From sequence record OR532817.1: a DNA stretch of 64,000 bases, one strand, 5' to 3'. Numbering within the stretch: the stretch's first letter is position 1; every line of letters begins with the position of its first letter. Below the pieces are notes generated by a model, which saw nothing but the letters and a program-made list of their open reading frames with translations, ran no database searches and was not told the DNA's origin. A program made the translations under genes and the position numbers. Shown one piece after another: positions 1,135 through 19,673 of the stretch.

Positions 1135-1228
1135 AATCCACCCGGGGAGATTTATCTTTACAATAAAAGTACTTGCATAATTCTTTCAGTACTGCTATTA
1201 TATATTCATACCAAACAGGAGAACTACC

Positions 1229-1399
1229 ATGAAATACGCGTACTCTTATTTTATTGTAAACGGTGAACGTTTGACCATCGGCCAGGCAGCGGTAAAGCAT
1301 GAAATCATTTGCGATGATCTGGCAAAGATGCTACCAGGTGAAACGCAAGAGTTTTACAAGGGCTTTCAGAAAGTCACTGTAACACGTTGTGAAGATTGA
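1229..1399 (+). CDS. Hypothetical protein (56 aa, not in ORF track)
   Basis: Promoter at 1173, RBS CAGGAG, MKYAYSYFIVNGE...RCED*. Confidence 0.75.
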   Translation: MKYAYSYFIVNGERLTIGQAAVKHEIICDDLAKMLPGETQEFYKGFQKVTVTRCED

Positions 1400-1464
1400 T
1401 CCAGTATTAGGGGTAGGAATACCCCTAAAACGTCCTGTAACGCATTATAAGAGGTTTTTATAAT

Positions 1465-1692
1465 ATGGCTATAGAAGTTAACGCTGGGGATATAAAGGCG
1501 GCTGTACTGCGTACCCTGAAAGCATACGGCAGAAAGCTGAATGATCGCAACGTTCCCTATTATTTCCTTGCTGCTACTCATAAAATGGCAATCGCTGAGG
1601 CTCGCGGGTGGCTGAATGATCGCAGTACTGTAAAGAGTACCAGAACAAGAAACGCAATTGAGCGATGGATAAAAGAATTAAATCATTTCTAA
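1465..1692 (+). CDS. Hypothetical protein
   Basis: 75-aa ORF with plausible composition; weak RBS. Confidence 0.6.
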   Translation: MAIEVNAGDIKAAVLRTLKAYGRKLNDRNVPYYFLAATHKMAIAEARGWLNDRSTVKSTRTRNAIERWIKELNHF

Positions 1693-1764
1693 TAGTTCAG
1701 TTATGGAATCAGTACTGATTCCCTGTTTAGTACTGAAATTATAAGGGGAGTTAATTAATTCCCC

Positions 1765-1779
1765 TTTACAAATCTTTAC
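1765..1779. promoter_or_regulatory. CpxR-type tandem box
   Basis: TTTACAAATCTTTAC, 10 bp upstream of the -35 of sRNA copy 4. Confidence 0.6.
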
Positions 1780-1823
1780 AAAAGAATGGTTGACATAGTA
1801 TCCCAGTACTGGTATTATGTATT

Positions 1824-1872
1824 CATAGACAGAACAAGTCTTTGGCCCACCGGGTGCGGAGGAGTATCTATT
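1824..1872 (+). ncRNA. Two-hairpin sRNA-like element, copy 4
   Basis: TTGACA (1790)-17-TATTAT; AGAC-AGAACAA-GTCT; GCCC-ACC-GGGT-GCGGAGGAGTATCTAT. Confidence 0.65.
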
Positions 1873-1880
1873 AGATTGAA

Positions 1881-1901
1881 TGATAATGATAATGATTCTC
1901 A
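1881..1901. promoter_or_regulatory. Overlapping Fur-box-like sites between convergent sRNA copies 4 and 5
   Basis: TGATAATGATAATGATTCTCA. Confidence 0.75.
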
Positions 1902-1914
1902 TTTACTGTACTGA

Positions 1915-1965
1915 ATATATTTCCGCACCCTTTTGGGCTTTTCGATTACTTTCTACTTGTTAATA
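1915..1965 (-). ncRNA. Two-hairpin sRNA-like element, copy 5
   Basis: Minus-strand TTGCAT...TATACT; GCCC-AAAA-GGGT-GCGGAA. Confidence 0.5.
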
Positions 1966-1998
1966 AGTATACCATAATCAGTACTGAATGCAATGGTC

Positions 1999-2013
1999 TT
2001 TACAAATCTTTAC
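1999..2013. promoter_or_regulatory. CpxR-type tandem box
   Basis: TTTACAAATCTTTAC. Confidence 0.55.
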
Positions 2014-2110
2014 AAAAGAAAATAATTATAAAAAGTACTGAAAAAGTACTTGACGCAATAATGTAGTACTGGCATAATACATCCATACCAAACAGAACGG
2101 AGTAACTAAA

Positions 2111-2398
2111 ATGTTTAATGAAAATGATCATATTGTTAAAGAGTTTTCTTTCAGTAAGCCTATCCATTTAGAAAACGGTGAAACGCTGGACAATAAATTT
2201 TATGGTAGTATTATTAAGCGTTATACATCGCGGAGTAGTACTGGAATTTTGTGGGAAGTGAATAAACAGTACAATGGTAATTCGCTGGTTGTCAATGAGT
2301 GGGAAAGTTATGCAGTAGCTGAAATGGATTTTTCTAACTTTATTACTGAATCTTTGAACGATGATATCTTTTACAAGTTCACAGCGGAAAGGGTTTAA
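2111..2398 (+). CDS. Hypothetical protein
   Basis: Own promoter at 2049, RBS GGAG. Confidence 0.8.
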   Translation: MFNENDHIVKEFSFSKPIHLENGETLDNKFYGSIIKRYTSRSSTGILWEVNKQYNGNSLVVNEWESYAVAEMDFSNFITESLNDDIFYKFTAERV

Positions 2399-2518
2399 AA
2401 AGTTTTAAAGAGTACTTGACAACATAAACCAGTACTGTATAATGTATTGCATAGAAAGGAGATTCCATTATTCTGGAATCTCCGATAAAACAAACTAATC
2501 GGTGAAGGAGTAATTGCC

Positions 2519-3127
2519 ATGAATGTTATCGATACCATCTATTCTAAATCTTTTATCGAACTGAATGAAGAGCAGAAAGAAAAAGCAATTGATATTATGC
2601 GGGAAATTGAAAATCAGGACACTACCCCTTATTGGTCAATTGATCTTGTTAACCAGATGAAAGAAAAATTAGTACAATATGGAATTGATGATTCTGAAAT
2701 TTTGTGGTCTGGATTTTGTTCACAGGGAGACGGTGCAAGTATCAGCACTGAATCAATTAATACTGAGATGTTTTTACGTAAGGTAAAAGCGTGGTCTAAA
2801 TTTAAAGGCTTGCGTAAATTCATCTCCGAAGAAACTATTTCTTTGAGTGTTCGCCGGGTGAGCCATCATTACTATCATGAATATTGTGTTAGTGGTAATG
2901 TTGAAATTGCTTATTGTGAAGATGTTACCGCCAAACAAGAACAATTAGTGGACGATTTGCAAACTTTGATCACAAATACTATTCGTGATTTGTCTCGTGA
3001 ATTGTATAAAGATTTAGGGAATGAAAACGATTATCATAACAGCGATGAAGCATTGATTGAATTGATTAATGCAAATGATTATCATTTCAAAGTTAACAGT
3101 ACTGGCGACGTGTTAGGACTTGCATAA
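2519..3127 (+). CDS. Hypothetical protein, WSGFxSQGDGA motif family
   Basis: Promoter 2416, leader hairpin 2458-2483, RBS AAGGAG; motif recalled from phage/plasmid hypotheticals. Confidence 0.8.
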   Translation: MNVIDTIYSKSFIELNEEQKEKAIDIMREIENQDTTPYWSIDLVNQMKEKLVQYGIDDSEILWSGFCSQGDGASISTESINTEMFLRKVKAWSKFKGLRKFISEETISLSVRRVSHHYYHEYCVSGNVEIAYCEDVTAKQEQLVDDLQTLITNTIRDLSRELYKDLGNENDYHNSDEALIELINANDYHFKVNSTGDVLGLA

Positions 3128-3215
3128 TGACTAAATTATATATTCGTTTCTGTTTTGCCTGGTACTTGTATAATCTGCAAAATGGTTATCCAGGGAAATA
3201 GTACTGATATACTGT

Positions 3216-3247
3216 AAAACGTCCTGTAAACGATTATGGGACGTTTT
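3216..3247. repeat. AAAACGTCC-N14-GGACGTTTT inverted repeat
   Basis: Near-identical copy at 11407-11438; partial copies 1427-1457 and 16062-16092. Confidence 0.85.
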
Positions 3248-3318
3248 AAGGAATATTAGTACAATGTTAGTACTGAATGATTTAAACGCCTTACAGTGGC
3301 TTACAGGAGATTATATCA

Positions 3319-3531
3319 ATGGCTAAATGTACTATTTGTAATAAAGAAATTATTCTTTCCCCTAGTGCAGAGGAACGAGCTAAAAAGTACGGCGGAAAAG
3401 CCAGCGACTACACAAAACTCTTTACTACTCATGCGACTTGTGCTGTTAATAAAAGTTCAAATGCCAACATTGAATTAATGCGTAAAATCAATAATGATTT
3501 TATTAATTCCTGTAAAAAAGTACTTGCATAA
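3319..3531 (+). CDS. Small putative Zn-binding protein
   Basis: CxxC (CTIC) and HxxC (HATC); RBS CAGGAG. Confidence 0.75.
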   Translation: MAKCTICNKEIILSPSAEERAKKYGGKASDYTKLFTTHATCAVNKSSNANIELMRKINNDFINSCKKVLA

Positions 3532-3610
3532 AGTTTTCAGTACTGGCATAATACATCTATACCAAACAAAAAGGGAATCAGTGCTGATTCCAAGATAAGG
3601 AGTAACTGAA

Positions 3611-3925
3611 ATGAGTACTAAAGAACTGAATGTAACTACCAACACTTATAAGATGTTAGGCGGTCGGATGTTGCGTGATTATTACGCAATTGAAATCGAA
3701 GAACGCGAATTACCCGAAGATAAACACTATTGGGAAAGTGGTGTGAGTCCTCTGTTACGGGTAACAACGTCTAAGCATGTTTTCTTTACTTCTCGCATTC
3801 ATGTTAATAAGCGTGTCGAATTGACTTTCTCGTTTAGTGGAAGCTATAAAGATTATGAGATATTAAATGATCATATCGTTATCAGCAAATTTATTCAAAT
3901 GTATGGTGCGGATTCTTTACTTTAA
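3611..3925 (+). CDS. Hypothetical protein
   Basis: Promoter 3524, leader hairpin, RBS AAGGAG. Confidence 0.8.
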   Translation: MSTKELNVTTNTYKMLGGRMLRDYYAIEIEERELPEDKHYWESGVSPLLRVTTSKHVFFTSRIHVNKRVELTFSFSGSYKDYEILNDHIVISKFIQMYGADSLL

Positions 3926-4011
3926 GTACTTGACAATTCGATCCAGTACTGTATAATGTATTACACCAAAGGGGATACATAGTGTATCCCTGATATAAAG
4001 GAGTAGCGACT

Positions 4012-4371
4012 ATGCGAGCTTTTAACGTTTATAAGAATGACAAGAAAATTGACGTTGTTTATTATTCCGAAGTAATGACGGCAAAAGAAGTAACCGATTT
4101 GCTGAATAGCCGTGGTGAATACAACGGCGAAGTAAAAGCATTTCGGTCATTGAATAGTGCGAATATTCGCACAGTACTGAAAAATGCTAAAACTGTTTTA
4201 TTCAATGATGACGAATATTTTAATAAAGATGTTACGGGTATTAAAAACCTGGAAGATCTGAAAAGCCTTATTGGTATTAAAGGCAACGTATACAAAGTGG
4301 GGGAAGTCGGATCTCGCCATGAATATAAATTAGCCAATAGTGATTATAAATTTTCAATCCTGGTAATGTAA
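4012..4371 (+). CDS. Hypothetical protein
   Basis: Promoter 3930, leader hairpin, RBS AAGGAG. Confidence 0.8.
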   Translation: MRAFNVYKNDKKIDVVYYSEVMTAKEVTDLLNSRGEYNGEVKAFRSLNSANIRTVLKNAKTVLFNDDEYFNKDVTGIKNLEDLKSLIGIKGNVYKVGEVGSRHEYKLANSDYKFSILVM

Positions 4372-4372
4372 T

Positions 4373-4576
4373 ATGAAAGTTTATATTTTGGAAGTGGAAG
4401 AATGTAATTCATATTCTTACAGTGGTACACTATCACGCGTGGAGGCTGTATTTGCCAGTGAGAAAGAAGCCCACGCCGCCGGGATTTAAAAAGTAAAAGA
4501 AGGCTATGAAGGTTATAGCGTCGATGCTTATGATATTCAGGGCGATCTTTCAGTACTGTTAAAGGAATTAAAATAA
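4373..4576 (+). pseudogene. Small ORF interrupted by an in-frame TAA
   Basis: MKVYILEV...HAAGI*(4487-4489)KVKEGYEG...LKELK*; frame continues to a stop overlapping the next ATG. Confidence 0.65.
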
Positions 4577-4791
4577 TGGAATATGAATTAATATATCATA
4601 CTCGATTATATGTTATTTTCTTTGAAATAACGTTATGGGGAGTAAAGGCAACGATTTATAATAAAGACGTTGCCGACGATCAAGAATGGATCGTTGTTGC
4701 AGAAGATAAAACGCCTCATGATTCGTTAAGTACTGATTTTAAATTATGCCGTGAATTATTAAAGAGTATAAGAAAAGATAATAATATATAA
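4576..4791 (+). CDS. Hypothetical protein
   Basis: TAATG coupling, RBS AAGGA. Confidence 0.7.
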   Translation: MEYELIYHTRLYVIFFEITLWGVKATIYNKDVADDQEWIVVAEDKTPHDSLSTDFKLCRELLKSIRKDNNI

Positions 4792-4794
4792 AAC

Positions 4795-4822
4795 AAAGGG
4801 GATCAATCGATCCCCTTTTTGT
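4795..4822. terminator. Bidirectional intrinsic terminator
   Basis: AAAGGGGATC-AATC-GATCCCCTTTTTT. Confidence 0.85.
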
Positions 4823-4842
4823 TTCAGTACTGAATTAATAAT

Positions 4843-4905
4843 AGATACACTACGGCACCCTATGGGTCAGTGCCTTGTGTCCGGCTTATGTGGTTATTAT
4901 GCCAG
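4843..4905 (-). ncRNA. Two-hairpin sRNA-like element, copy 6
   Basis: Minus-strand TTGACT-17-CATAAT; GCC-GGACACAA-GGC; ACCC-ATA-GGGT-GCCGTAGTGTATCTAT; points into the 4795 terminator. Confidence 0.65.
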
Positions 4906-4934
4906 TACTGCGAACATAAGTCAATAGATGATTT

Positions 4935-4949
4935 GTAAAGAAGTGTAAA
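4935..4949. promoter_or_regulatory. CpxR-type tandem box
   Basis: GTAAA-GAAGT-GTAAA, 11 bp upstream of the minus-strand -35 of copy 6. Confidence 0.6.
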
Positions 4950-5152
4950 TGCACAGGAAGCGTTTTAAGGCGTTAATCTGTTGCTGGTGGCTGATAGTAC
5001 AGAGAAGTGTTTTAGATTGATTGTAGGCCGTTGTAGGCGTTTATAGATAGTAAAGTACTGATAATGTTTAATGATCCTGGTATGTGCAAATTATTTTAAT
5101 TTTTTTCGTATTGGGTATTGACGGATTATGTCAGTACTGGCATAATGTATCA

Positions 5153-5220
5153 CATAGAGCGACGGGCAAGACAAGTAGTCAACCTGTAAGACATACGAAA
5201 ACCAGGTGACGTTGCACTGA
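5153..5220 (+). ncRNA. Candidate three-way-junction small RNA
   Basis: TTGACG (5118)-17-CATAAT; stems GCGACG/CGTTGC, GAC/GTC, ACCTG/CAGGT; no ORF. Confidence 0.45.
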
Positions 5221-5286
5221 TTCAGTACTGAATAATACATAACATCTAAATGTTGACAGTACTAAAAAATGTAGTATAATGATTAA

Positions 5287-5460: not shown

Positions 5461-5552
5461 AAAAAAGTAGTTGACAAGTACTAACGAGAATGAGATAATC
5501 TCTCTCGTTGAAACAAACAAACAATCTTAATCAAAACTTAAAGGTGAATAAA

Positions 5553-6053
5553 ATGGCTAAACTGAATTCTGTTGTTGTTGCTCTGATCGCTGGTGATATC
5601 GCTGCTCTGAATGCTTCTTTCGCGTCGGTATCGATGGAAGATATGAAAACTGTTCGTAACAACTTTAACGATTTTTACTCTAAATTCAAAGCTGCAAATG
5701 AAGCGGCGGAAGCGGCGGCAAAAGAGCGTAAAGCACAGATCGAAACCGAAACGAAAGAACTGGTAGACGCCCTGGTAACTGCTGGCCTGGATCTGGAAAT
5801 GGCCGCCGAAGTCGCCAGCCAGAAAATGGCGGTGAAATATCCCGAACTGGCTCCGAAGTCGGGAACTGGTAAAACCTGGTCGTTTGAAACCGTATTCGTT
5901 AACGTTGACGGTGAAAAACTGGAAATTGGCACCAAAGGCAACAAAGGCAGTATGAAAGCACTGGCGGCGGCACGCGAAGCAATTGCCGCTGGCAAATACA
6001 AAGATCGTGCTGAATGGATCGCCGCTCACGCCTGGACTGAAACCGAAGCGTAA
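5553..6053 (+). CDS. H-NS-like protein (putative)
   Basis: N-terminal coiled-coil pattern resembles H-NS (SMEDMKT...EAAEAAAKERKAQI...LVTAGLDLE vs TLETLEE...AAAAEVEERTRKL...LIADGIDPN); GKTWS vs H-NS TKTWT; strongly biased codons; promoter 5471; RBS AAGGTG. Confidence 0.5.
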   Translation: MAKLNSVVVALIAGDIAALNASFASVSMEDMKTVRNNFNDFYSKFKAANEAAEAAAKERKAQIETETKELVDALVTAGLDLEMAAEVASQKMAVKYPELAPKSGTGKTWSFETVFVNVDGEKLEIGTKGNKGSMKALAAAREAIAAGKYKDRAEWIAAHAWTETEA

Positions 6054-6075
6054 TAATTCAGTACTGTAATAATTA

Positions 6076-6189: not shown

Positions 6190-6300
6190 CATAGTGTTCG
6201 CTACGCTCACATAATGATCTTACTCGTTGCACTCGTAAGATCATTATCCAATCGGCCTTTGGCTATTTCTTTTTGATTTCCTACGGAAACCAAACGAAAC
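6190..6300. repeat. Serial hairpin array
   Basis: GTG-TTCGCTACGCT-CAC; ATAATGATCTTAC-TCGTTGCACTC-GTAAGATCATTAT; TTTGATTTC-CTACG-GAAACCAAA. Confidence 0.6.
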
Positions 6301-6669
6301 CACCAGCAAAGGCAGATCCCATTATTTGATTTAGTTAGTACTGCAATGAATTAGTTTAATCGCACTACAAAGCAATCAATCCCTTTTGTAATAGCTCATA
6401 GAACGCAATAAGACGCGTTTAAATGACTTCCCTATGTAATGCCATTCCTTTTTAATAAGTCCTCTTAAAACGCGTTACAGTTCGTTATACGGCGTTTAAT
6501 AATACTCATCATTTCTTTTTCAAAAAGTACTTGCATTAATGATCCAGTACTGCAATAATGTACTCACTGAAACGCAGTAAGCGAAGTAAGTAAATGCAAA
6601 TAAGTACTTGACAAAGTGTTGTAGTACTGGCATAATGAATACATCAAAACGATTAAGGAGAAACACCAA

Positions 6670-7216: not shown

Positions 7217-7486
7217 ATGAAAGGTATTAGTACTTTAATTGATAAAAACACTCATGTAAGACGTTCAATGATTGCCGTATCACTGGCTAAAGTTGTTGCA
7301 AGTGGTTATCTGGTTTTTGTTGTAGATGGTAAATTGCAAGAGCGTTCAATTGCATTTAGTACTAAAGAAAATTGCCGTTATATTGTATACAAGAAAGAAG
7401 CATACAAGATAGATTTACCAGCGAAACCGATCTCCGGTGGTTACAATGTTGAAAGCCTTTATGAAAGGCCACCGTATACTGCGTAG
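7217..7486 (+). CDS. Hypothetical protein
   Basis: RBS TAGGAG. Confidence 0.75.
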   Translation: MKGISTLIDKNTHVRRSMIAVSLAKVVASGYLVFVVDGKLQERSIAFSTKENCRYIVYKKEAYKIDLPAKPISGGYNVESLYERPPYTA

Positions 7487-7740
7487 AATCGATTTTGAGC
7501 GGCTTTAATGAAATATAGGGTATCAGTACTGATACCCGTTTAAAACAGTGTAGGAGTGATTCTGTGAAGCGTGAACAAGCTTTATTGACGCCTGAAGAGG
7601 CAAGACGCTATGAAATGTTTTCAAACCAGGAAACGATCAAAGCGGCACAATATAACCCGGTTGCTTGTACAGTACAAAGAAAGAATTTTGTACTAAATGA
7701 AGTAGAAAGTATTATCAAATCAAATAAGGAGTAAAACGCT

Positions 7741-8013
7741 ATGCAAAATAACCGCCCAATGATCCGCAACATGCTTTTCGTATTCCAGAAAAAAGTTAAT
7801 GTAACTTCGGTAAATGGTGAACGTAAATTAAATGCAGCATTCGCCAAATATACCCAAAGTAAAAACATCCATTACTTTTATCTTACTCTGAATGAGTTTA
7901 ATGATCTGGTAAAAGAAATGTTTGTCAGTACTGAAATTGTTGCACCTGTAAGCACTGATATCATTCTAAAAGAATGGGAAAGTTTTTACAAAAGTTCTGT
8001 TGTAATCGCTTGA
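7741..8013 (+). CDS. Hypothetical protein
   Basis: RBS AAGGAG. Confidence 0.8.
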   Translation: MQNNRPMIRNMLFVFQKKVNVTSVNGERKLNAAFAKYTQSKNIHYFYLTLNEFNDLVKEMFVSTEIVAPVSTDIILKEWESFYKSSVVIA

Positions 8014-8067
8014 CAACATAATCCAGTACTGGCATAATAACTACATAGACCACAAAGGAGAAACATA

Positions 8068-8247: not shown

Positions 8248-8330
8248 AAGTACTTGCTTTAATCATTCAGTACTGTATAATGTATTACATCAAAGGGAAT
8301 GAATCATTCATTCCCACATAACCAGGAGTA

Positions 8331-8711: not shown

Positions 8712-8740
8712 AGGGGTTGACTTCGGTCGCCCCTTTTGTT
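8712..8740 (+). terminator. Terminator hairpin that also contains the -35 of the sRNA promoter
   Basis: AGGGGTTGAC-TTCG-GTCGCCCCT-TTTG; same design at about 10559, 14224, 16866, 19018. Confidence 0.7.
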
Positions 8741-8751
8741 ATTATATATTC

Positions 8752-8802
8752 ATACCACAGAGCAAGTGGTTTAGCCCACAGGGTGCCGAGATGTATCTAT
8801 AG
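8752..8802 (+). ncRNA. Two-hairpin sRNA-like element, copy 7
   Basis: TTGACT-17-TATTAT; CCAC-AGAGCAA-GTGG; GCCC-ACA-GGGT-GCCGAGATGTATCTATA. Confidence 0.7.
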
Positions 8803-8896
8803 TTTAATAATTTGAAGTACTGAAAAATAATTATAAAAAGTACTTGCTAGACGTGAATTCTTTTAAGAATTCACTTGTATTTGTGATTCAGTACTG
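8781..8896 (+). repeat. 116-bp near-identical direct repeat, copy A
   Basis: Matches 19085-19200; includes GTGAATTCTT-TT-AAGAATTCAC. Confidence 0.9.
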
Positions 8897-8932
8897 TATA
8901 ATGTACTTATACCAATTAAGGAGATTATCCAA

Positions 8933-9094: not shown

Positions 9095-9203
9095 TTAAAA
9101 AAGTATTGACTGCAATACTCAAGTACTGTATCATAACTGGTGTAGCGTTCGTGTTAGCAGTTGCTATAGTGTTTAGTACTGTAATTGTATTGGGGAACAT
9201 ATC

Positions 9204-9509: not shown

Positions 9510-9595
9510 GTGTTGACAACACGTTCCAGTACTGTATAATGTATTACATCAAAGGGGATACATAGTGTATCCCTGAATTAACAGGAGTAAACCAT

Positions 9596-9844
9596 ATGTC
9601 TAGTATCGTTATCAATGAAACCTTATTATCTGTTACCTATGACAATGACAGTGTTTTTCCGGGTAAAGATTATGGGGACGAAATTCCCGTAAAAGTTGAA
9701 CTCGATCAAAGTGTCGGTAATGCCGACGATATTAAACGCACTATGGTGGTTAAAATTGGCGATATCACTTTATTGCCCATTGATATTGATTATATCAAGT
9801 TTATGATTGATCGTGCAAATACCATTGCCGAAACCTTCAAATAA
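9596..9844 (+). CDS. Hypothetical protein
   Basis: Promoter 9513, leader hairpin, RBS CAGGAG. Confidence 0.8.
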   Translation: MSSIVINETLLSVTYDNDSVFPGKDYGDEIPVKVELDQSVGNADDIKRTMVVKIGDITLLPIDIDYIKFMIDRANTIAETFK

Positions 9845-9927
9845 GTACTTGACAACTGGTTTCAGTACTGTATAATGTTTATCAAAGGGGATACATAGTG
9901 TATCCCTGATTTAAAGGAGATTCTAAA

Positions 9928-10141: not shown

Positions 10142-10187
10142 AAAACCAGTACTTGATTTAATTATTGAGTACTGGTATTATATATTC

Positions 10188-10537: not shown

Positions 10538-10597
10538 GTACTGAAAAGTTTTCAAATAAGGGGTTGACTTCGGTCGACCCTTTTGCTATTATATATT

Positions 10598-10643: not shown

Positions 10644-10917
10644 AGTTTATTGAATTGTAGTACAGAAAAATATTTCTTGCATAATTCATTTCTTATGATA
10701 TAATAGTAATCACATAAATTAATTGGAGTGAACAAAAATGTTATTAGATTGGCTCAATACTTTATCCCCTGCTGCTGGCCGTCGCTGGGCTATCGGTTCG
10801 TCGGTTGCCATCGTTGTAGGCGTCATTGTACTTTTAGTGATGATTTTCTAAAAAGTACTTGCTTTAATGATCCAGTACTGTATAATGTACTTATACCAAA
10901 TAACAGGAGTAAAACTG

Positions 10918-11395: not shown

Positions 11396-11554
11396 TGATG
11401 TACTGTAAAACGTCCTGTAAGCGATTATGGGACGTTTTAAGGAATAGCACTATGATTTATTCAGTACTGTGAAAAAACTCTTGTAAATTGATTCCAGTAC
11501 TGTATAATGCTTTACATGGGAAAATTATTCTCCACATTATTAGGAATAAAGAAT

Positions 11555-11782: not shown

Positions 11783-11881
11783 AAAAAGTACTTGCATAAT
11801 TCTTTCAGTACTGTATACTGTACTTATACCAAACAAAAGCAAATGGAATCAGTACTGATTCCCTGTAAAGGAGATAGACCA

Positions 11882-12236: not shown

Positions 12237-12361
12237 TAGTAATTATATGATAAAGCTGGTGGCTTGTCAACACTTATTTTAAAATAAAAAGTACTGAATA
12301 GTACTTGCAAAAAGTATTCAGTACTGTATAATGTTTGTATTGAGATTAAGGAGTACTTACT

Positions 12362-12901
12362 ATGTTAATCAAAATGTATCACGGTTCTAATAATTTTGAT
12401 CATCGCCGTGGATATCTGGGCGGAAAACCTGGCAATTTTCATATGGGTTTTGGACTATATCTAACTAACTCTTATCGCTGGGCTGATAATTATGGGCGAC
12501 GTCATTATGAGTTAGATTTAGATATTTGTAGTACTGGTGCCGCACATAATGTATGGATTCCTACTAAACACTTTATGGAATTCATAAGAGTATATTGTAC
12601 TAAAAAGTTTTATACAATGTGCTGTAAAGAATTTAAAGACCGTGAATCTTTGAATGTAGAACGCGTTGAATTGCTTATTATCAATATGGAAAGGCACGTT
12701 ACGAAAATCGCTAAACCATTTGCTGAATTCGTCGCTGCCTGGGGTTGTACGCATAGCATTGAAATATCCGGTAACTATGGTGGTGTTTGTGTGCGGCTTT
12801 ATGATTTCAGTACTATAAAGAATTGTATCATAAGCCAGGAAACTCAGGATTTTTATTATCCAGATGAATTGACAAGATATCCTCAAAAAAACTTGTATTA
12901 A
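12362..12901 (+). CDS. ADP-ribosyltransferase-fold protein (putative)
   Basis: YHGS...GFGLYLT....A..YG signature of H-Y-type/PolyVal-like ARTs. Confidence 0.55.
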   Translation: MLIKMYHGSNNFDHRRGYLGGKPGNFHMGFGLYLTNSYRWADNYGRRHYELDLDICSTGAAHNVWIPTKHFMEFIRVYCTKKFYTMCCKEFKDRESLNVERVELLIINMERHVTKIAKPFAEFVAAWGCTHSIEISGNYGGVCVRLYDFSTIKNCIISQETQDFYYPDELTRYPQKNLY

Positions 12902-12953
12902 TGATTCAGTACTGATATAATGAATTAAATTAACCAGGAGGAAATATCTTAAA

Positions 12954-13082
12954 ATGAATAAACGTCAATTGATGATCGATGCATCTCGTTTCCGTTCAAA
13001 AGAAGAAAAGAGAAGTTGCATTAAATGGGTTTTGTCAACTTTCATTATTGGATTACTTATTGTTGCTTTTGTTTATAGTTAG
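12954..13082 (+). CDS. Small membrane protein (42 aa, not in track)
   Basis: RBS CAGGAGG; hydrophobic C-terminus WVLSTFIIGLLIVAFVYS. Confidence 0.7.
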   Translation: MNKRQLMIDASRFRSKEEKRSCIKWVLSTFIIGLLIVAFVYS

Positions 13083-13166
13083 TACTTGACAATATAATCC
13101 AGTACTGTATAATGTTTATCAAAGGGAATGAATTATTCATTCCCGATTAATCAAAGGAGTTTTGCC

Positions 13167-13391: not shown

Positions 13392-13477
13392 AAACGTTTG
13401 ACAACTGATTTAAGTACTGTATAATGTTTATCAAAGGGAATGAAATATTCATTCCCGATTAATCAAAGGGGTTTATC

Positions 13478-13624: not shown

Positions 13625-13704
13625 AATAATTAGTCAGTACTATTGACAACGGGTGATAGTACTGCTATAATTATTTTAACTTATACGGAATGGAGTTAAA
13701 ACAA

Positions 13705-14214: not shown

Positions 14215-14262
14215 TTTAAAAAAAGGGGTTGACTTATGTCAGCCCTTTTGTTATTATTAGTA

Positions 14263-14312: not shown

Positions 14313-14400
14313 TTTATGTTGGTCTGAATCATTAATTTTCTTGACAATTGGTTTAGTACTGGATATAATAGCCGCCATTGAATACATGAGGATTTTAAAA

Positions 14401-14667
14401 ATGGCCTATCATACACCACATAGACACTTCATTGATAAACGCGGTATGGCTTTTAAAGCAATGAGTGACAATCGTAACACACAAATGTACTTTAAAGATA
14501 TGACGTTAGAAGAAGCAATTGAAGCCGTAAGGAATGATCGTAAGCTTTCCAAGAAAGTTGCATCAGTACTTAATGCTTTTTGGTTTGAACGTACTACCAA
14601 CAAAGAATACAAAGAAAAGATGATTGCACTTGGTAAAGTAGTACGAGAAGAAAAATTATATCTTTAA
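14401..14667 (+). CDS. Hypothetical protein
   Basis: Start moved to 14401 (RBS GAGGA, own promoter). Confidence 0.75.
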   Translation: MAYHTPHRHFIDKRGMAFKAMSDNRNTQMYFKDMTLEEAIEAVRNDRKLSKKVASVLNAFWFERTTNKEYKEKMIALGKVVREEKLYL

Positions 14668-14730
14668 GTACTTGACTATGTGATTCAGTACTGCTATTAT
14701 ATATTCATACCAATTAAGGAGATTGACCAA

Positions 14731-14838: not shown

Positions 14839-14918
14839 AATAATTATTACAGTACTATTGACAACACGTGATAGTACTGGTATAATTACTTTACCAAATC
14901 AAAAAGGAGTAACCAAAA

Positions 14919-15194: not shown

Positions 15195-15206
15195 GGAATA
15201 ATAATC

Positions 15207-15572
15207 ATGGAAAAAGAATTTAAAATCAAATACAATATCAGTACTGATGGCGGTTTTGAAGTTCCAGAAGAAGATCAAGAACGCCTTAATGATGTTATTA
15301 TGATTGACATTTCAAATAAAATCATTCAAGGCTACCGCGAAGGTGAATTGTGTGAATCGTTGATGGATCAATTCGATGAAGTGGAAACGTTTTATCGTGG
15401 CTGGTGGAGTATCGAAGAAGTTCACAAAGTACACGAATACCGCGTATTCTGGATTAACGGCGTTAATGATATCGAAGATATCATTGTAAAAGAAAGTAGT
15501 GAATCCGCCGCCATTCAGTACTTTAAAGATCACTACCCAAACAAACGTTATCACCATTTAGAAAAAATTTAA
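15207..15572 (+). CDS. Hypothetical protein
   Basis: RBS AAGGA. Confidence 0.8.
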   Translation: MEKEFKIKYNISTDGGFEVPEEDQERLNDVIMIDISNKIIQGYREGELCESLMDQFDEVETFYRGWWSIEEVHKVHEYRVFWINGVNDIEDIIVKESSESAAIQYFKDHYPNKRYHHLEKI

Positions 15573-15659
15573 AAAGTACTTGACACCTAATATCAGTACT
15601 GATATATTAATACGCATAGGGGCAAACAACTTGCCCCACCAAACAAAAGGAACTACCAA

Positions 15660-16016
15660 ATGATTACTAAATTCTACGCTACTCGTGAACTGGCTCGGAT
15701 CGTCGCTCGTGAAGAAGGTGAAACCTTCAAAGATATGGGTAAAGATTCCCCTGCTGGTCAACGCTGGGCAGTACTGTTCCGCGAGGTCAAAGACCTGGTA
15801 GAAAACGCTAAAGCCGTTGAAATGAACGTTCCCACCAAAGAAGATAAAGATCTGACTGATGCCCTCGCCGCCGCATTCTCCGCGATGGATAAAGCCGCTG
15901 CGGTAGTACTGAAAGTGCCGGAATTCGTAACCCGCAAAGTGCATTCAGTACTACAAAATAAATTCAACGGTAAACAGGTTCAGGTGTTTACTAAACGTAA
16001 AATTCCGGTCATGTAA
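15660..16016 (+). CDS. Hypothetical protein (ATRxxAR...RWAV motif)
   Basis: Promoter 15580, leader hairpin, biased codons. Confidence 0.8.
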   Translation: MITKFYATRELARIVAREEGETFKDMGKDSPAGQRWAVLFREVKDLVENAKAVEMNVPTKEDKDLTDALAAAFSAMDKAAAVVLKVPEFVTRKVHSVLQNKFNGKQVQVFTKRKIPVM

Positions 16017-16094
16017 AATCTGACTATTACAGTACTAACAAAGGGGCTTCAATGCCCCTTTAAACGTCCTGTAAACCATTCTAAGAGGTTTTGC

Positions 16095-16343
16095 ATGAAA
16101 AAGGTACAACTACACAAAGGAGTAATGAAAGTTCATTATAATGCCCCGCAACGCATTATAGATAGAGCCATTGAACTAGCCAATCAATATCTAGCTGGTG
16201 GATTAACTCCCAGGAAGTTAAGCAACGGGAAGTTATATGTAATCAACGTTGATACTAATAATCGTATAGTAATCAAAGGTGAAAGCATATCACTGTATGA
16301 ACATCAACAGTATAACAAGAAAGTAAAAAATATTAGTAGATAA
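16095..16343 (+). CDS. ParE/RelE-like toxin-fold protein (putative)
   Basis: PRKL...VINV...RIVI...LYEHQQYN resembles the PRRL/RWRLL/LMSHE.YN pattern; probable start 16125 (RBS AAGGAG). Confidence 0.45.
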   Translation: MKKVQLHKGVMKVHYNAPQRIIDRAIELANQYLAGGLTPRKLSNGKLYVINVDTNNRIVIKGESISLYEHQQYNKKVKNISR

Positions 16344-16422
16344 GTGTTGACAACTGATTTCAGTACTACCATAATGTATACATACAAGGCAATACCACCT
16401 AATAACATAGGAGTAACTGAAA

Positions 16423-16845
16423 ATGAAAAAATCCACTAAAATTATCTTAGGTGTATTTGTTGTTCCGGCAGTAGCCTTTTTTACTTGTGCTATGATTTTT
16501 GGTGATGCTTCTCGGGTTGCCGCAAAAATCGAAAAAGAAAAACAAGTCCAGGTTGAAGTTAAGAAAGAAGAAAAGAAAAATTATAACACTGTATGGGAAG
16601 CAATTTGCCATACCAGTAATGGTAAAAGGATCTCCATCCTTACAGCGATGAATAATGGAAAATCAATCGTCGGAAATGAATATATGGAAGTTACTTCCAG
16701 TACTGGTAAAGAATTTGTAATGACGAACTATAATAACAATAATGTTGCAATTGTTACACAGGATTTTAAAGGCAATGCAGTACTGGAATATCATACGGAA
16801 TATGAAGTAATATTTGCAAAATGCACGTTTGAATGGGGTGCATAA
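16423..16845 (+). CDS. N-terminally membrane-anchored protein
   Basis: Basic start then IILGVFVVPAVAFFTCAMIF; promoter, RBS. Confidence 0.75.
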   Translation: MKKSTKIILGVFVVPAVAFFTCAMIFGDASRVAAKIEKEKQVQVEVKKEEKKNYNTVWEAICHTSNGKRISILTAMNNGKSIVGNEYMEVTSSTGKEFVMTNYNNNNVAIVTQDFKGNAVLEYHTEYEVIFAKCTFEWGA

Positions 16846-16902
16846 AAATAAACAAAAAATCAAAAAAGGGGTTGACATATGTCAGCCCCTTTGCTATTAT
16901 TA

Positions 16903-16950
16903 ATATCAAGAAAACAAGCTAACCCACAGGGTGCATAAATGTATCTATAG
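16903..16950 (+). ncRNA. Two-hairpin sRNA-like element, copy 12
   Basis: TTGACA (16872); AAAACAA; ACCC-ACA-GGGT-GCATAAATGTATCTATA; hairpin 1 weak. Confidence 0.6.
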
Positions 16951-17025
16951 TTTATTAAAGAATTTTAGTACTTGACAACGTAGTACATCAGTACTAAAAT
17001 ATCTACATACAAAGGAGATTACCAA

Positions 17026-17610
17026 ATGAACAAACATCTTAAAGTACTGAATAAATGTAAATCCAATACCGAAATGTTACTGTACTGTTACAAAAATTTA
17101 ATTAAACTCGGTAAAGGTTCATCCCGCACGGTATTTTTGTTAACAAAAAATAAAGTACTGAAAGTTGCTCATAACCATATTGGCAACCAACAGAATACGG
17201 CGGAAATCACTGCCTGGCTGTATGTTGATTATGATCGCTATTATAATAAACGTTTTTTCGCTAAAGTGTTCCCTGATATGTCGCATTTTAAAGATGTATA
17301 CATAGTACAGGAGTACTGCGACAATATCAGTACTAAAGAAGCGAAGCCATACATCGAACATTACTTGACACCTCGCACTATTGAAAATGAGCGTGCTAAA
17401 CGCTTCCACACGGCGTTAAGAGATGTAGACAATACCCTTAACTATAAAACGCTGGTGGACTTAAACATGGGCAATATAGGCCGTTCTGTAAGGGGTGCAA
17501 TCAAACTACGTGACTATGGATTATCTGAACATATTGCTGAACAGTACCGAGAAGCCCGCTTCCAATACCAGAAGCTCAAAAGTATTAGTAAAATAAGTAT
17601 TGATTTATAA
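17026..17610 (+). CDS. Ser/Thr protein kinase (phage type)
   Basis: LGKGSSRTV Gly-loop, VLK lysine, helix-C E, DLNMGN catalytic loop, DYG. Confidence 0.8.
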   Translation: MNKHLKVLNKCKSNTEMLLYCYKNLIKLGKGSSRTVFLLTKNKVLKVAHNHIGNQQNTAEITAWLYVDYDRYYNKRFFAKVFPDMSHFKDVYIVQEYCDNISTKEAKPYIEHYLTPRTIENERAKRFHTALRDVDNTLNYKTLVDLNMGNIGRSVRGAIKLRDYGLSEHIAEQYREARFQYQKLKSISKISIDL

Positions 17611-17677
17611 TTTCAGTACTGGTATAGTACTTTCACAGGGGAGATAATCTCCCCCAAATCACAAAGGAGATTTTACC

Positions 17678-18040
17678 ATGAGTACTAAACCATTCGTTAC
17701 TACCCGTTCAAATCTCACCGAAATCTATGTACACGGTGGGTATGAGGAAACGTATGTCACTGGTATTATGGTAGAATTCCATCAGGGTTATCGGTTTATG
17801 TTGGTAGATTCAGAAATCTATCATACCCAACAAGATAAACATGGTTATGTCAATAAGTACTCCACCGATGAAGTACTGAAACGCCTGGATAACAAAATTA
17901 AACAAATTCAAAAACATCTTGACAACGGCGGAAAACTTAATCATTTACTTTGGGATAGCTTAGATCCCTGCTACGGTTCGGATGCATATGGTAAAAGCCG
18001 TGACACTGCAATGAAAGTACTTAAAGATTATTTCTTTTAA
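17678..18040 (+). CDS. Hypothetical protein
   Basis: Promoter, hairpin, RBS AAGGAG. Confidence 0.8.
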   Translation: MSTKPFVTTRSNLTEIYVHGGYEETYVTGIMVEFHQGYRFMLVDSEIYHTQQDKHGYVNKYSTDEVLKRLDNKIKQIQKHLDNGGKLNHLLWDSLDPCYGSDAYGKSRDTAMKVLKDYFF

Positions 18041-18121
18041 GTATTGACAAGCAATTCCAGTACTGTATAATATATTTCACAAGGGGAACATACCGTTCCC
18101 CGATTCAAGGAGATTAACCAA

Positions 18122-18304
18122 ATGAATAAATTCACAGTATTCGAAACAATCGCAGCAAACGGTGCTCCGATGTACTATGCTGTCAAAGGTGATACAGTAC
18201 TGGTATCCGGCAACGGTTGTCAATCATTTAAACCTTCTAACGTTTCCCCGTATTATGTCAGAACTAATATGGCGTATAGTCATATGCAAAAAATTACTCA
18301 ATAA
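18122..18304 (+). CDS. Hypothetical protein
   Basis: Promoter, hairpin, RBS AAGGAG. Confidence 0.8.
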   Translation: MNKFTVFETIAANGAPMYYAVKGDTVLVSGNGCQSFKPSNVSPYYVRTNMAYSHMQKITQ

Positions 18305-18386
18305 CCTATTGACATAGGTTATCAGTACTGGCATAATGTATTTCAAGGAGGTAATAACACCTCCTACCTTCAAGGAGTAGTTGACT

Positions 18387-18623
18387 ATGAATACTAAAGA
18401 AATGCTTTGTGAGTTCGCCAGTAACAATCTTGGCAACGCCGCTTTCATTGATGGTTTTAATTACGTAGCAACTCGTGATCAAGAAGGTAAAGTATTCGTT
18501 AAAGATCGTATGGGCTTTTCTATCCAGGTTCAATCCGGTACTGCAAGCCATATCGACGGCATGAATGTATGGGCTGCTACTATCCCCGGTGATGGAACAT
18601 ATCATTTCCGTATCGTAAAATAA
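18387..18623 (+). CDS. Hypothetical protein
   Basis: Promoter, hairpin, RBS AAGGAG. Confidence 0.8.
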   Translation: MNTKEMLCEFASNNLGNAAFIDGFNYVATRDQEGKVFVKDRMGFSIQVQSGTASHIDGMNVWAATIPGDGTYHFRIVK

Positions 18624-18722
18624 TTTAAAAAGTACTGGACAATACAATCCAGTACTGTATAATGTTTTGCATACACAAGAGATTCCAGTACTGGAATCTC
18701 TAATCTAAAGGAGAATACCAAA

Positions 18723-19004
18723 ATGATTAACGGCACTCTGATTAACTATGCAAAACGCCGTGATGTAGAAATAGAAGTACTGAAAGCAGGCGAAGTTGAC
18801 GACGACGCCCAGGTATGGTTCTACACCGCAGACAATGATTGTGAACCAGTACTGATGTATCTGATTAATAATGATGGTTCTCTTACTTATCGTAGCAAAC
18901 TGATGAAGTCCCTGGAAGATATGCCAGCACATATCAATAATAAAGAAGTGCTGAAACGCGTAATCTGCTACATCTCAGACCAGCACAAAGCGGATATGAT
19001 GTAA
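18723..19004 (+). CDS. Hypothetical protein
   Basis: Promoter, 24-bp palindromic leader, RBS AAGGAG. Confidence 0.8.
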   Translation: MINGTLINYAKRRDVEIEVLKAGEVDDDAQVWFYTADNDCEPVLMYLINNDGSLTYRSKLMKSLEDMPAHINNKEVLKRVICYISDQHKADMM

Positions 19005-19054
19005 TCTTTACAAATATGGGGGTTGACTAATGTCAGCCCTATTGGTATTATATA

Positions 19055-19105
19055 TTCAATCCAGCGAACTGGTCTAACCCTCAAGGGTGCCGAGATGTAT
19101 CTATA
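19055..19105 (+). ncRNA. Two-hairpin sRNA-like element, copy 13
   Basis: TTGACT (19023); CCAG-CGAA-CTGG; ACCC-TCAA-GGGT-GCCGAGATGTATCTATA. Confidence 0.65.
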
Positions 19106-19200
19106 ATTTAATGATTTGAAGTACTGAAAAATAATTATAAAAAGTACTTGCTAGACGTGAATTCTTTTAAGAATTCACTTGTATTTGTGATTCAGTACTG
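19085..19200 (+). repeat. 116-bp near-identical direct repeat, copy B
   Basis: Matches 8781-8896. Confidence 0.9.
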
Positions 19201-19285
19201 CCATAATATATCCATACAAGGGAAACATAGTGTTTCCCGATAATCCACAGCAATAGTGCTGGTGGATGAACCAGGAGTAATAACC

Positions 19286-19582
19286 ATGCAAGACAAATCA
19301 ATTCACGTTCAAGTAGTTTCAAGCCGTGGCTATGACGATGTAGTACTGGATATCATGGTTAAAGATCTGCGGGACTATGCAATCATTGCACGTCATATCA
19401 TGGTTAACTCCATTTGTATCAGTACTGGTGCCGATATGGAAGAAAACCGCTTACATATAGAAGAACATCTATACAAAGCACGCATGAATGACAGCAGTGT
19501 ATTCATCATTGAAGGTGCCGAGGGTAAAGAGTATACTGTATACCTTCGCCAGTACCAGGAAGTAGAAAAAGAAGAAGATTAA
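19286..19582 (+). CDS. Hypothetical protein
   Basis: Start moved to 19286 (RBS CAGGAG). Confidence 0.8.
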   Translation: MQDKSIHVQVVSSRGYDDVVLDIMVKDLRDYAIIARHIMVNSICISTGADMEENRLHIEEHLYKARMNDSSVFIIEGAEGKEYTVYLRQYQEVEKEED

Positions 19583-19673
19583 TTTATAAAAAGTACTTGC
19601 TTTAATAGTTCAGTACTGTATACTGTTTATCAAGGGGAAGCAATAGTGCCTCCCCACTCATAGGAGATACACC

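Follow-up and report, generated by a model that had tools for sequence, protein, structure and literature searches.

Why do the early promoters of a bacterial virus carry the same six-base palindrome, AGTACT, twice and 20 bp apart? The question is raised by a 64,000-nucleotide stretch of sequence record OR532817.1 (referred to as the window), in which a reading of the sequence alone had noticed such pairs between positions 1168 and 19625. It took the fixed distance for the geometry of a protein that binds two sites on one face of the DNA, or of a methylation-sensitive switch. Analysis revealed a different picture. AGTACT is a palindrome that is kept at high density, at the DNA level, throughout a clade of phages, and that is also fixed at two positions in their immediate-early promoters. 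The promoter pairs are the promoter-embedded fraction of this hyperabundant palindromic word, which has the core AGTACT and the preferred form CAGTACTG and disfavours a G on its 5' side.

The window comes from a RaK2/K64-1-type Klebsiella jumbo phage (Alcyoneusvirus), one of the jumbo myoviruses of ~350 kb. In the first 8 kb, the window matches Klebsiella phage RCIP0023 at 99.5% and phages K64-1, RaK2 and Muenster at 93-96%. Limits of the direct terminal repeat (DTR) were obtained by alignment to Muenster, whose 20,030-bp DTR was defined by PhageTerm. Base 1 of the window corresponds to base 311 of Muenster, and the DTR ends at about base 20,351, in agreement with a fall in GC content from ~36% to ~28% at 20 kb. 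The span of the promoters (1168-19625) is thus the early-gene region of the DTR. It contains ~45 small genes, almost all on the plus strand, with promoters and hairpins in the gaps between them. Two features extend over large parts of the window:

1 to 20,351, plus strand: DTR part (~20 kb) with the early-gene region, recognised by Muenster homology, composition and site counts
1 to 64,000, no strand: field of 260 AGTACT sites, preferred form CAGTACTG

AGTACT is over-represented at the DNA level

The 260 AGTACT sites of the window compare with 14.1 +/- 3.8 in shuffled sequences, and CAGTACTG, with 88 copies, is the commonest 8-mer of the window. The first 20 kb hold 149 of the sites, about one third of which are inside coding sequence. 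Density in the DTR reaches 7.5 per kb (13 per kb in non-coding and 4 per kb in coding DNA). Between 20.4 and 64 kb, 102 of 111 sites are found inside genes, in all three reading frames. The whole genome of RaK2 (346 kb) contains 937 sites, or 2.7 per kb, and 785 of these lie outside the DTR. Along the genome the density is roughly uniform at 10-15 per 5 kb, except in the repeat, where 30-39 sites occur per 5 kb. In every 50-kb block of RaK2, AGTACT is the top enriched palindromic hexamer, at 5.6-14.9 times expectation.

To account for codon usage, synonymous codons were reshuffled in such a way that every protein and the codon pool were kept. Genes between 20 and 64 kb of the window contain 102 AGTACT sites versus 27 +/- 4.5 in these shuffles, DTR genes 52 versus 9, and structural genes of RaK2 93 versus 24. 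Since AGTACT exceeds the codon shuffles 4-6-fold within genes, its enrichment is selected, or driven, at the nucleic-acid level.

Further, we examined the surroundings of the hexamer. At position -1, C is preferred 2.6-3.4-fold and G is disfavoured; the mirror image is seen at position +6, and there is little information beyond. Variants at the outer position (NGTACT) are enriched 2-4-fold, while inner-position variants are not enriched. The half-sites CAGTAC and GTACTG display no consistent strand asymmetry. Symmetric flanks, graded variants and the lack of strand bias together favour a symmetric reader that acts on double-stranded DNA over an RNA signal. Outside the DTR, gaps between sites are Poisson-like (coefficient of variation 0.99). 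No helical periodicity of 10-11 bp was detected among sites outside promoters, only the 3-nt coding period.

Some local deviations were observed. A tandem array of ~20 paralogous genes of ~190 amino acids (aa) occupies ~39000-50800; several of them encode F-Q-Y-S-T as TTCCAGTACAGTACT, and this conserved protein motif is the source of a few AGTACT sites (at most 6, with CAGTACAGTACT). The tail-fibre/depolymerase block of RaK2 (325000-335000, locus L009) has 2 and 6 AGTACT per 5 kb versus ~12 elsewhere, which fits recent horizontal acquisition without amelioration. A link of phage tRNAs to AGU/ACU codons was considered and is weak (tRNA-Ser GCU, tRNA-Thr UGU).

Related phages share the word but not its positions

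We wondered if AGTACT is also abundant in other phages. In terminal repeats it is enriched 17-21-fold in Munch (Salmonella; 132 sites in 24 kb), 121Q (E. coli, Asteriusvirus; 130 in 22 kb), CBB (Pectobacterium, Mimasvirus; 108 in 16 kb) and fHe-Yen9-04 (Yersinia, Eneladusvirus; 89 in 14 kb). AGTACT enrichment thus marks five genera, with Klebsiella, E. coli, Salmonella, Pectobacterium and Yersinia as hosts, and amounts to 10-20-fold throughout the clade. Two IMG/VR contigs with 79% capsid identity have 3-4-fold enrichment around the capsid gene. No enrichment was found in ~40 environmental relatives (60-65% identity of the major capsid protein), in Pseudomonas phage PA5oct or in T5. As for the host, a 50-kb sample of E. 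coli K-12 contains 3 AGTACT (~0.06 per kb), so that density in the phage is ~45-125 times higher per kb.

Individual sites are not preserved. When RaK2 was compared with a 72%-identical relative, 4 of 27 aligned AGTACT sites were common to both (~15%), and the background for any hexamer is 17%. Density is kept while positions turn over, promoters excepted. AGTACT therefore displays the traits of signature words such as the DNA uptake sequence (DUS) of Neisseria, the uptake signal sequence (USS) of Haemophilus, Chi and HIP1: a genome-wide excess beyond codon usage that is shared by the clade, absent from outgroups and the host sample, and preserved as density rather than as position. In the distant environmental relatives CAGCTG and TGGCCA are mildly enriched; the counts are too low, and too much affected by codon usage, for us to speak of analogous signatures.

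A search of open-access literature on RaK2, CBB, fEgEco12 and jumbo phages yielded no mention of the AGTACT motif, with subscription papers, e.g. the GAP32 paper, outside that scope. The signature is apparently previously undescribed.

AGTACT is placed to the base in early promoters

The arrangement AGTACT-N14-AGTACT occurs exactly 18 times in the window and never in shuffled sequences. The first copy is at 1168-1193, the last at 19592-19617, and all are situated in promoters of the DTR. Among AGTACT-to-AGTACT distances of up to 80 bp, 20 bp is represented 18 times and every other distance at most 4 times. The first AGTACT shares its final T with the start of a TTGNNN -35 hexamer in 17 of the 18 pairs; the remaining pair has TGGACA. 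The second AGTACT begins 9 nt past the -35, at about -19 to -14, and is separated from the -10 by 1 nt in 10 pairs (16-bp spacer) and by 2 nt in 8 pairs (17-bp spacer). The sequence-only reading had described just this: 18 promoters with AGTACT at the start of the -35, and a distance of 20 bp that is constant across both spacer lengths. Of the two triples with an extra upstream site that it listed, 12290/12300/12320 is correct, while the other is really 2034/2045/2065, with gaps of 11 and 20 bp. Its -10 hexamers TATAAT and CATAAT are present, and so are TATTAT, AATAAT, TATACT and TATATT.

All 18 pairs, along with ~20 further sites, fit sigma-70 promoters (-35 TTGACA-like, -10 TATAAT-like, 16-18 bp apart), and perfect 12/12 hexamer matches occur 12 times in the first 20 kb. 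The promoters lie upstream of genes that have a ribosome-binding site and the same orientation, in intervals that separate the annotated plus-strand genes of RCIP0023 and Muenster. At least 17 further plus-strand and 3 minus-strand promoters of the DTR possess the spacer (second) site without the 20-bp partner.

Two-site early promoters (-35, spacer, -10):
1168 to 1201, plus: sites 1168 and 1188; TTGCAT, 17 bp, TATTAT
2045 to 2078, plus: sites 2045 and 2065, extra site 2034; TTGACG, 17 bp, CATAAT
2411 to 2443, plus: TTGACA, 16 bp, TATAAT
3519 to 3552, plus: TTGCAT, 17 bp, CATAAT
3925 to 3957, plus: TTGACA, 16 bp, TATAAT
6526 to 6559, plus: TTGCAT, 17 bp, AATAAT
6603 to 6636, plus: TTGACA, 17 bp, CATAAT
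8249 to 8281, plus: TTGCTT, 16 bp, TATAAT
9844 to 9876, plus: TTGACA, 16 bp, TATAAT
10148 to 10181, plus: TTGATT, 17 bp, TATTAT
10854 to 10886, plus: TTGCTT, 16 bp, TATAAT
11787 to 11819, plus: TTGCAT, 16 bp, TATACT; 26 bases across both sites identical to the promoter at 1168
12300 to 12332, plus: sites 12300 and 12320, extra site 12290; TTGCAA, 16 bp, TATAAT
13081 to 13113, plus: TTGACA, 16 bp, TATAAT
14667 to 14700, plus: TTGACT, 17 bp, TATTAT
15575 to 15608, plus: TTGACA, 17 bp, TATATT
18631 to 18663, plus: TGGACA, 16 bp, TATAAT
19592 to 19624, plus: TTGCTT, 16 bp, TATACT

Promoters with the spacer site only, unless stated otherwise:
1790 to 1818, plus: AGTACT at 1805, 9 nt past the -35
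5118 to 5146, plus: AGTACT at 5133
8010 to 8038, plus: AGTACT at 8025
8875 to 8902, plus: AGTACT at 8890; -35 TTGTAT; in a ~100-bp segment duplicated near 19179
9106 to 9134, plus: spacer-site promoter, AGTACT at 9122, 10 nt past the -35
9513 to 9540, plus: AGTACT at 9528; degenerate upstream position AAGTGT
11481 to 11508, plus: AGTACT at 11496
12893 to 12921, plus: AGTACT at 12908; -35 TTGTAT
13398 to 13425, plus: AGTACT at 13413
13636 to 13671, plus: spacer site 13658 and upstream site 13636 shifted by 2 nt, 22-bp spacing
14341 to 14369, plus: spacer-site promoter inside a gene, AGTACT at 14355, 8 nt past the -35
14851 to 14886, plus: spacer site 14873 and upstream site 14851 shifted by 2 nt, 22-bp spacing
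16347 to 16375, plus: AGTACT at 16362
17600 to 17628, plus: AGTACT at 17615; -35 TTGATT
18044 to 18071, plus: AGTACT at 18059; degenerate upstream position AAGTAT
18309 to 18337, plus: AGTACT at 18324
19179 to 19207, plus: AGTACT at 19194; -35 TTGTAT

Leftward promoters of the spacer-site build:
867 to 894, minus: TTGACT-N9-AGTACT-G-TATAAT
1087 to 1114, minus: TTGATA-N9-AGTACT-G-TATAAT
4896 to 4924, minus: TTGACT-N9-AGTACT-GG-CATAAT

For counts independent of AGTACT, promoters were defined from their -35 and -10 hexamers alone. In the DTR, 24 of 36 such promoters contain AGTACT in the spacer, 20 of them exactly 9 nt after the -35; between 20 and 64 kb, none of 26 promoter-like sites does. When promoters are picked without reference to AGTACT, the information content of the CAGTACTG columns is close to that of the -35 and -10 hexamers, and the spacer is almost unconstrained in its first 6-7 columns. 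AGTACT sites of the DTR are 94.6% conserved in RaK2, background hexamers 86.9%. The -35 might be expected to be weaker where the upstream site is present, and it is of consensus type in 6 of 18 versus 9 of 15 promoters, a difference that is not significant and open to ascertainment bias.

The sharpness of the 20-bp peak has a second source. The promoters have conserved leaders in common (TATAATGTaTtaCA...), and some are near-identical recent duplicates, e.g. those at 1168 and 11787 or at 6526 and 10854. Duplication of promoters thus contributes to the peak, sharp as it is. Direct evidence for the copying of promoter cassettes within the DTR comes from a 100-bp duplication (8801-8900 and 19105-19204, 94% identical) that comprises a promoter, a hairpin (GTGAATTCTTTTAAGAATTCAC) and 2 AGTACT sites. 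A LexA box in CAGTACTGTATAAT was considered as well; by inspection it is a half-site only.

In related phages the distance between the two sites varies. It is 20 bp in the studied phage and in Muenster, 21 bp (n=7) or 22 bp (n=4) in CBB, 20-23 bp in Munch, and 20 bp (n=2), 22 bp (n=3) or 24 bp (n=1) in 121Q. Promoters of 121Q have the spacer site at the same position and fall into both spacer classes; their upstream site is mostly absent, degenerate or displaced. Munch promoters frequently have the upstream site, and less often the spacer site. The layout in CBB is AGTACT, directly followed by TTGACA-N10-AGTACT-T-TATAAT. What is kept in four genera is that one site borders the -35 on its 5' side and the other precedes the -10 by 1-2 nt, with many promoters having a single site. 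Since the sites abut the hexamers, their separation of about two helical turns simply mirrors that of the -35 and -10. The 20-bp geometry is a by-product of this hexamer-abutting layout and of promoter descent from one cassette family, not a conserved feature.

Palindromes that overlap core promoter elements are what a cooperative two-site operator would have. Spacing, however, is neither conserved nor changed by whole turns, and the sites are not confined to regulated promoters, given those 785 of 937 outside the DTR of RaK2. The proposal that the 20-bp phase reflects binding of two sites on one face of the DNA is thus not supported, given spacings of 20-24 bp among relatives and the many single-site promoters. 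Non-random occurrence of the sites and their placement in promoters to the single base stand; neither the pair nor its 20-bp phase is the functional unit.

GCGC and Chi

Another palindrome is distributed in the opposite way. GCGC is absent from the window (0 versus 25 +/- 5 in shuffles) and from RaK2 (0 versus 215 expected in 346 kb), as well as from every AGTACT-rich genome or fragment examined (loci L001, L010, L011, L012, L014, L015 and L094). It is normal or high in AGTACT-poor relatives, PA5oct, T5 and E. coli (342 in 50 kb, ~7 per kb). Absence of GCGC and richness in AGTACT co-occur, and may point to a GCGC-specific nuclease encoded by phage or host.

Chi (GCTGGTGG) is found 8 times on the plus strand, always in the DTR (4983, 7170, 12255, 13890, 15400, 16194, 17451 and 19258), and once on the minus strand, at 6300; there is none in 20-64 kb. 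A similar strand bias occurs in Munch (11 plus, 2 minus), 121Q (9 plus, 1 minus) and fHe-Yen9-04 (6 plus, 0 minus). So oriented, Chi would act on RecBCD that enters at the right end of the genome, and the repeat may accordingly be protected or recombined under the guidance of Chi. Taken together, AGTACT, the absence of GCGC and Chi suggest, if speculatively, a lineage that manages self versus host DNA through sequence words.

A putative reader of AGTACT and its alternatives

A sequence-specific reader of the symmetric site is still the most economical idea. The explanation that we favour, tentatively and at somewhat less than even confidence, is that AGTACT tags phage DNA for a dimeric protein, which binds the word and in addition occludes early promoters. 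DNA-level selection would keep AGTACT frequent across genomes of the enterobacterial RaK2-like jumbo phages, and a symmetric (dimeric), sequence-specific factor, probably phage-encoded, would bind it. With a site density ~45-125 times that of the E. coli K-12 sample, such a factor would mark phage DNA. Early promoters would fire on naked incoming DNA with unmodified host polymerase. Later, the factor on sites that flank both hexamers would block contacts of sigma-70, and the promoter copies would serve as operators: as the factor builds up, immediate-early transcription would be switched off or timed in some other way. Because the promoters must work on naked DNA and the sites flank both hexamers, shut-off by occlusion would be the likeliest effect at the promoter level.

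Several points weigh against a tag that is read by such a protein. Repression rather than activation is inferred from site position only. An enzyme of the restriction-modification type would also account for a hexamer core that has little information in its flanks, and a transcription factor normally needs no ~900 sites inside genes. Within a single genome, the spread of promoter cassettes by duplication inflates the apparent positional constraint. Scans for DNA-binding proteins covered the proteins of the window, and no sequence-specific DNA-binding domain, helix-turn-helix included, was detected in DTR proteins (Pfam n=20, PHROGs n=46). Matches there were limited to an H-NS N-terminal domain, a ParE-like toxin, a kinase-like protein and DUF7300. 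One small DTR protein (7217-7486) is the only one conserved across all repeats examined and has 14 close homologues. It was folded as a candidate reader: its AlphaFold model (pLDDT 70) is all-beta, and Foldseek found nothing below E = 0.4 in the PDB. The reader, if any, is probably encoded outside the window or too novel for recognition.

We regard it as unlikely that AGTACT is instead a target of methylation or of Mom-like adenine modification, by which incoming DNA, modified at the sites beside the -35 and -10, would differ from newly replicated, unmodified DNA and an epigenetic, early-only switch would be formed, with the other sites as bystanders or protective marks. A strict six-base palindrome with little flanking information is typical for type II enzymes, and the phage does encode a C5 methyltransferase, a Dam-family methyltransferase (56646-57164 of the window, plus strand, identified by homology to RaK2 ORF447 and Pfam PF05869) and, in RaK2, a Mom-family protein (ORF149). 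Yet characterised Dam-family members are GATC-specific, and the reported target of Mu Mom, (C/G)A(G/C)N(C/T), does not fit CAGTA. The C5 enzyme of RaK2 (ORF194; 297 aa, L006:16708-17601) matches the catalytic domains of DNMT3A/B, its best solved relatives, over the full length (E = 2e-22). A DNMT3-like enzyme, as this resemblance predicts, is unusual for a phage and fits the methylation reported for RaK2 DNA, which is CpG methylation according to bisulfite data (PMC3622015). That report speaks for modification as such, but AGTACT contains no CpG. None of the three enzymes suggests AGTACT as a target, and the methylation-sensitive switch of the sequence-only reading loses its footing, as the DNMT3-like (CpG) and Dam-family methyltransferases are not predicted to act on this word. 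Selection for more sites is not explained by modification, and partial sites (NGTACT) are enriched too. In the relative fEgEco12, 10 enzymes cut the DNA in the normal way (PMC13070987). AGTACT might also be the site of a phage DNA-processing enzyme, be it a nickase, a type II topoisomerase or a recombination-initiating nuclease, whose dense sites would aid relaxation, recombination-dependent replication or recombination between copies of the terminal repeat; this, too, we consider improbable. The phage has a T4-type gp39/gp52 topoisomerase, and a symmetric 4-bp centre (GTAC) with symmetric flanks is seen at type IIA cleavage sites. Uniform, Poisson-like density with a peak in the DTR would suit such an enzyme, the 8 co-oriented Chi make the DTR resemble a recombination substrate, and the clade-wide absence of GCGC points to strong interaction with a sequence-specific nuclease. 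T5, itself a phage with long terminal repeats, is nicked site-specifically at the consensus R/GCGCRGG (PMC3517423). On the other hand, no enzyme is assigned to AGTACT, nicks every 370 bp are implausible, degenerate sites are usually enough for topoisomerases, and the single-base placement beside promoter hexamers is left unexplained.

Alternatively, the promoter copies could be intrinsic elements spread by cassette duplication, AGTACTG providing the TG of an extended -10 and AAAGTAC extending the -35/UP region, with the genome-wide enrichment unrelated. In the 17-bp spacer class the TG of AGTACTG is indeed at the canonical extended -10 position, the leaders (TATAATGTaTtaCA...) are common and some promoters near-identical, and placement follows the hexamers with no fixed site-to-site distance. 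In the 16-bp class, however, TG misses that position by one base; outside the DTR, AGTACT is found in 0 of 26 strong consensus promoters; and we know of no preference of sigma-70 for AGTAC 5' of the -35. It would further take a coincidence for the same word to be enriched 4-6-fold in genes and to be the top palindrome in five genera, and we think this explanation quite unlikely. Even less probable, to our mind, is a host (Enterobacterales) protein that the phage titrates or recruits, such as the nucleoid-occlusion factor SlmA. The motif is restricted to phages of Enterobacterales, although phylogeny explains its absence from PA5oct equally well, and it travels with Chi, a certain site of a host protein (RecBCD). 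To our knowledge, no other host protein has an AGTACT site. The SlmA consensus GTGAGTACTCAC is built around AGTACT, and binding depends on G1, T2 and a purine at position 3 (PMC3020112), but at position 3 of this frame the phage sites prefer C, and G is rarest. Full sites of type GTRAGYRCTYAC (G1, T2, A4 and G5 required) number 0 in the window and 1 in RaK2, and SlmA was rejected as the reader. Similarly slight are the chances of a neutral by-product of biased mutation, repair or gene conversion, as discussed for cyanobacterial HIP1, with no reader and hitch-hiking promoter copies. Free turnover of positions at constant density agrees with it, and so does the scarcity of AGTACT in the horizontally mobile tail-fibre block of RaK2 (325-335 kb), which looks as though amelioration had yet to occur. 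But a drive of the very-short-patch repair type should deplete the neighbours AGTATT and AATACT, which are at 0.9-1.1 of expectation; density is 3 times higher in the DTR, with 13 per kb in its non-coding DNA; and the promoter sites are positioned with single-base precision in four genera and exceed the background in conservation.

Returning to the tag that a dimeric protein would read, it could form part of a wider scheme, which we rate as doubtful. Enterobacterial RaK2-like jumbo phages, having no hypermodified bases, would tell own from host DNA by sequence words alone, with AGTACT as a positive tag, GCGC as a negative tag and Chi set against RecBCD. A phage protein reading AGTACT would direct protection, transcription timing or replication/packaging to phage DNA and would silence early genes of the terminal repeat. 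The absence of GCGC would let a phage nuclease destroy host DNA with the phage unharmed, and RecBCD at the genome end would be dealt with by the co-oriented Chi of the terminal repeat.

To evade restriction, phages as a rule rid their genomes of short palindromes. The present clade of 350-kb phages, by contrast, is filled with one restriction-type palindrome, wired into the cores of immediate-early promoters, and another, GCGC, is wholly eliminated. If the reader protein exists, it would represent a new kind of phage chromatin or self-recognition factor, and would offer a handle on early-gene shut-off and on separation of self and host DNA in jumbo phages without modified bases. The motif also defines early promoters of phages that are under development against Klebsiella, E. 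coli and Salmonella, and provides a simple clade marker (AGTACT-rich, GCGC-free, Chi in the terminal repeat).

Other features of the terminal repeat

A second promoter family, at 8713-8745, 10560-10592, 14225-14257, 16868-16900 and 19019-19051, is devoid of AGTACT. Its -35 (TTGACT or TTGACA) is located within a terminator-like hairpin (GGGGTTGACTtcggTCgaCCCCTTTT) and is followed by TATTAT, so that terminator and promoter are combined in one unit. This terminator-embedded family, GGGGTTGACT...TATTAT, is kept in 121Q and CBB.

The leftward promoters at 867-894 and 1087-1114 face the genome end and have no annotated gene downstream. On their left are GC-rich segments of ~50 nt and Fur boxes (~780-860 and ~1010-1085). 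They may drive small non-coding transcripts; Rfam reported nothing at these segments, and no family in a scan of the whole window. Matches to the 19-bp Fur box with up to 3 mismatches number 6 versus 0.26 expected (498-516, 790-808, 1016-1034, 1882-1906). All are in the non-coding first 2 kb of the DTR, adjoining AGTACT sites and leftward promoters, and control by iron/Fur or titration of Fur is possible.

Perfect palindromes of 18-22 bp with AGTACT at the centre, e.g. GGAATCAGTACTGATTCC, are found in leaders and intergenic DNA (1705-1722, 7518-7537, 11845-11862 and 18679-18700). Equivalent hairpins at other promoters differ in their loops, as if AGTACT had been inserted wherever the structure tolerates it. 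The element TTTACAAATCTTTACAA, a tandem TTTACA motif, is present in 5 intergenic copies (748, 1120, 1765, 1999 and 10127), all on the plus strand.

Several early proteins, all encoded on the plus strand, have recognisable features. The 166-aa product of 5553-6053 contains an H-NS N-terminal oligomerisation domain (Pfam PF22470, E = 4e-6); its syntenic homologue in 121Q is 34% identical, and it may be a mimic or antagonist of H-NS for the AT-rich genome. A ParE-like toxin domain (16095-16343, E = 2e-10) is kept in all 4 other repeats searched. The protein of 17026-17610 has a weak protein-kinase-like match, and that of 3611-3925 is a DUF7300 protein. In the 75-aa protein of 1465-1692, the C-terminal half resembles sigma-factor region 4.2 by eye, agreeing with a note in the Muenster annotation; it has no Pfam match, and no counterpart was found in repeats of the other genera.

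Comparison with known systems

Methylation-sensitive promoters, such as those of IS10, pap and Mu mom with GATC, resemble the AGTACT promoters in having a short palindrome over the -35 or -10 that could couple activity to the replication state. In contrast to these, AGTACT has no evident methyltransferase and its sites occur in hundreds.

SlmA sites of E. coli (GTGAGTACTCAC) share the AGTACT core and are likewise palindromes with multiple copies per chromosome, bound by a dimeric helix-turn-helix protein (PMC3020112). They number ~50 per 4.6 Mb of E. coli, whereas the phage has 937 AGTACT per 0.35 Mb, and the GT and purine flanks are absent or avoided in the latter.

With phage operators AGTACT has in common that symmetric sites are situated in or against the -35 and -10 of early promoters in a host-takeover region. 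As in lambda OR/OL, SPO1 TF1 and early shut-off of T5 and T4, such sites at strong early sigma-70 promoters would be expected to end early transcription at a later stage of infection. Classical operators, however, occur only at regulated promoters and have a known repressor, while AGTACT is mostly found in genes, the spacing of its pairs is not conserved, and no repressor was found.

The terminal repeat as a whole resembles the first-step-transfer repeat of T5: both are long direct terminal repeats, densely occupied by early genes that very strong sigma-70 promoters drive. T5-type early promoters (e.g. PN25) have -35 variants such as TTGCTT and a CTGTATAAT -10 region, as in the studied phage. 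As to the words, the two phages differ: T5 has neither AGTACT enrichment (4 versus 7 expected in 22 kb) nor avoidance of GCGC (64 versus 29).

In distribution, AGTACT is like DUS, USS, Chi and HIP1 (GCGATCGC), short words that are over-represented genome-wide, genes included. AGTACT, like these, is kept as a density, is common to related genomes and is rare in other DNA. DUS, USS and Chi are asymmetric and oriented, whereas AGTACT is palindromic; HIP1 is also a palindrome, and its reader is unsettled. What sets AGTACT apart from all four is that it resides in a virus, is much denser (2.7 per kb in the genome, 7.5 per kb in the terminal repeat) and is fixed in promoter cores.

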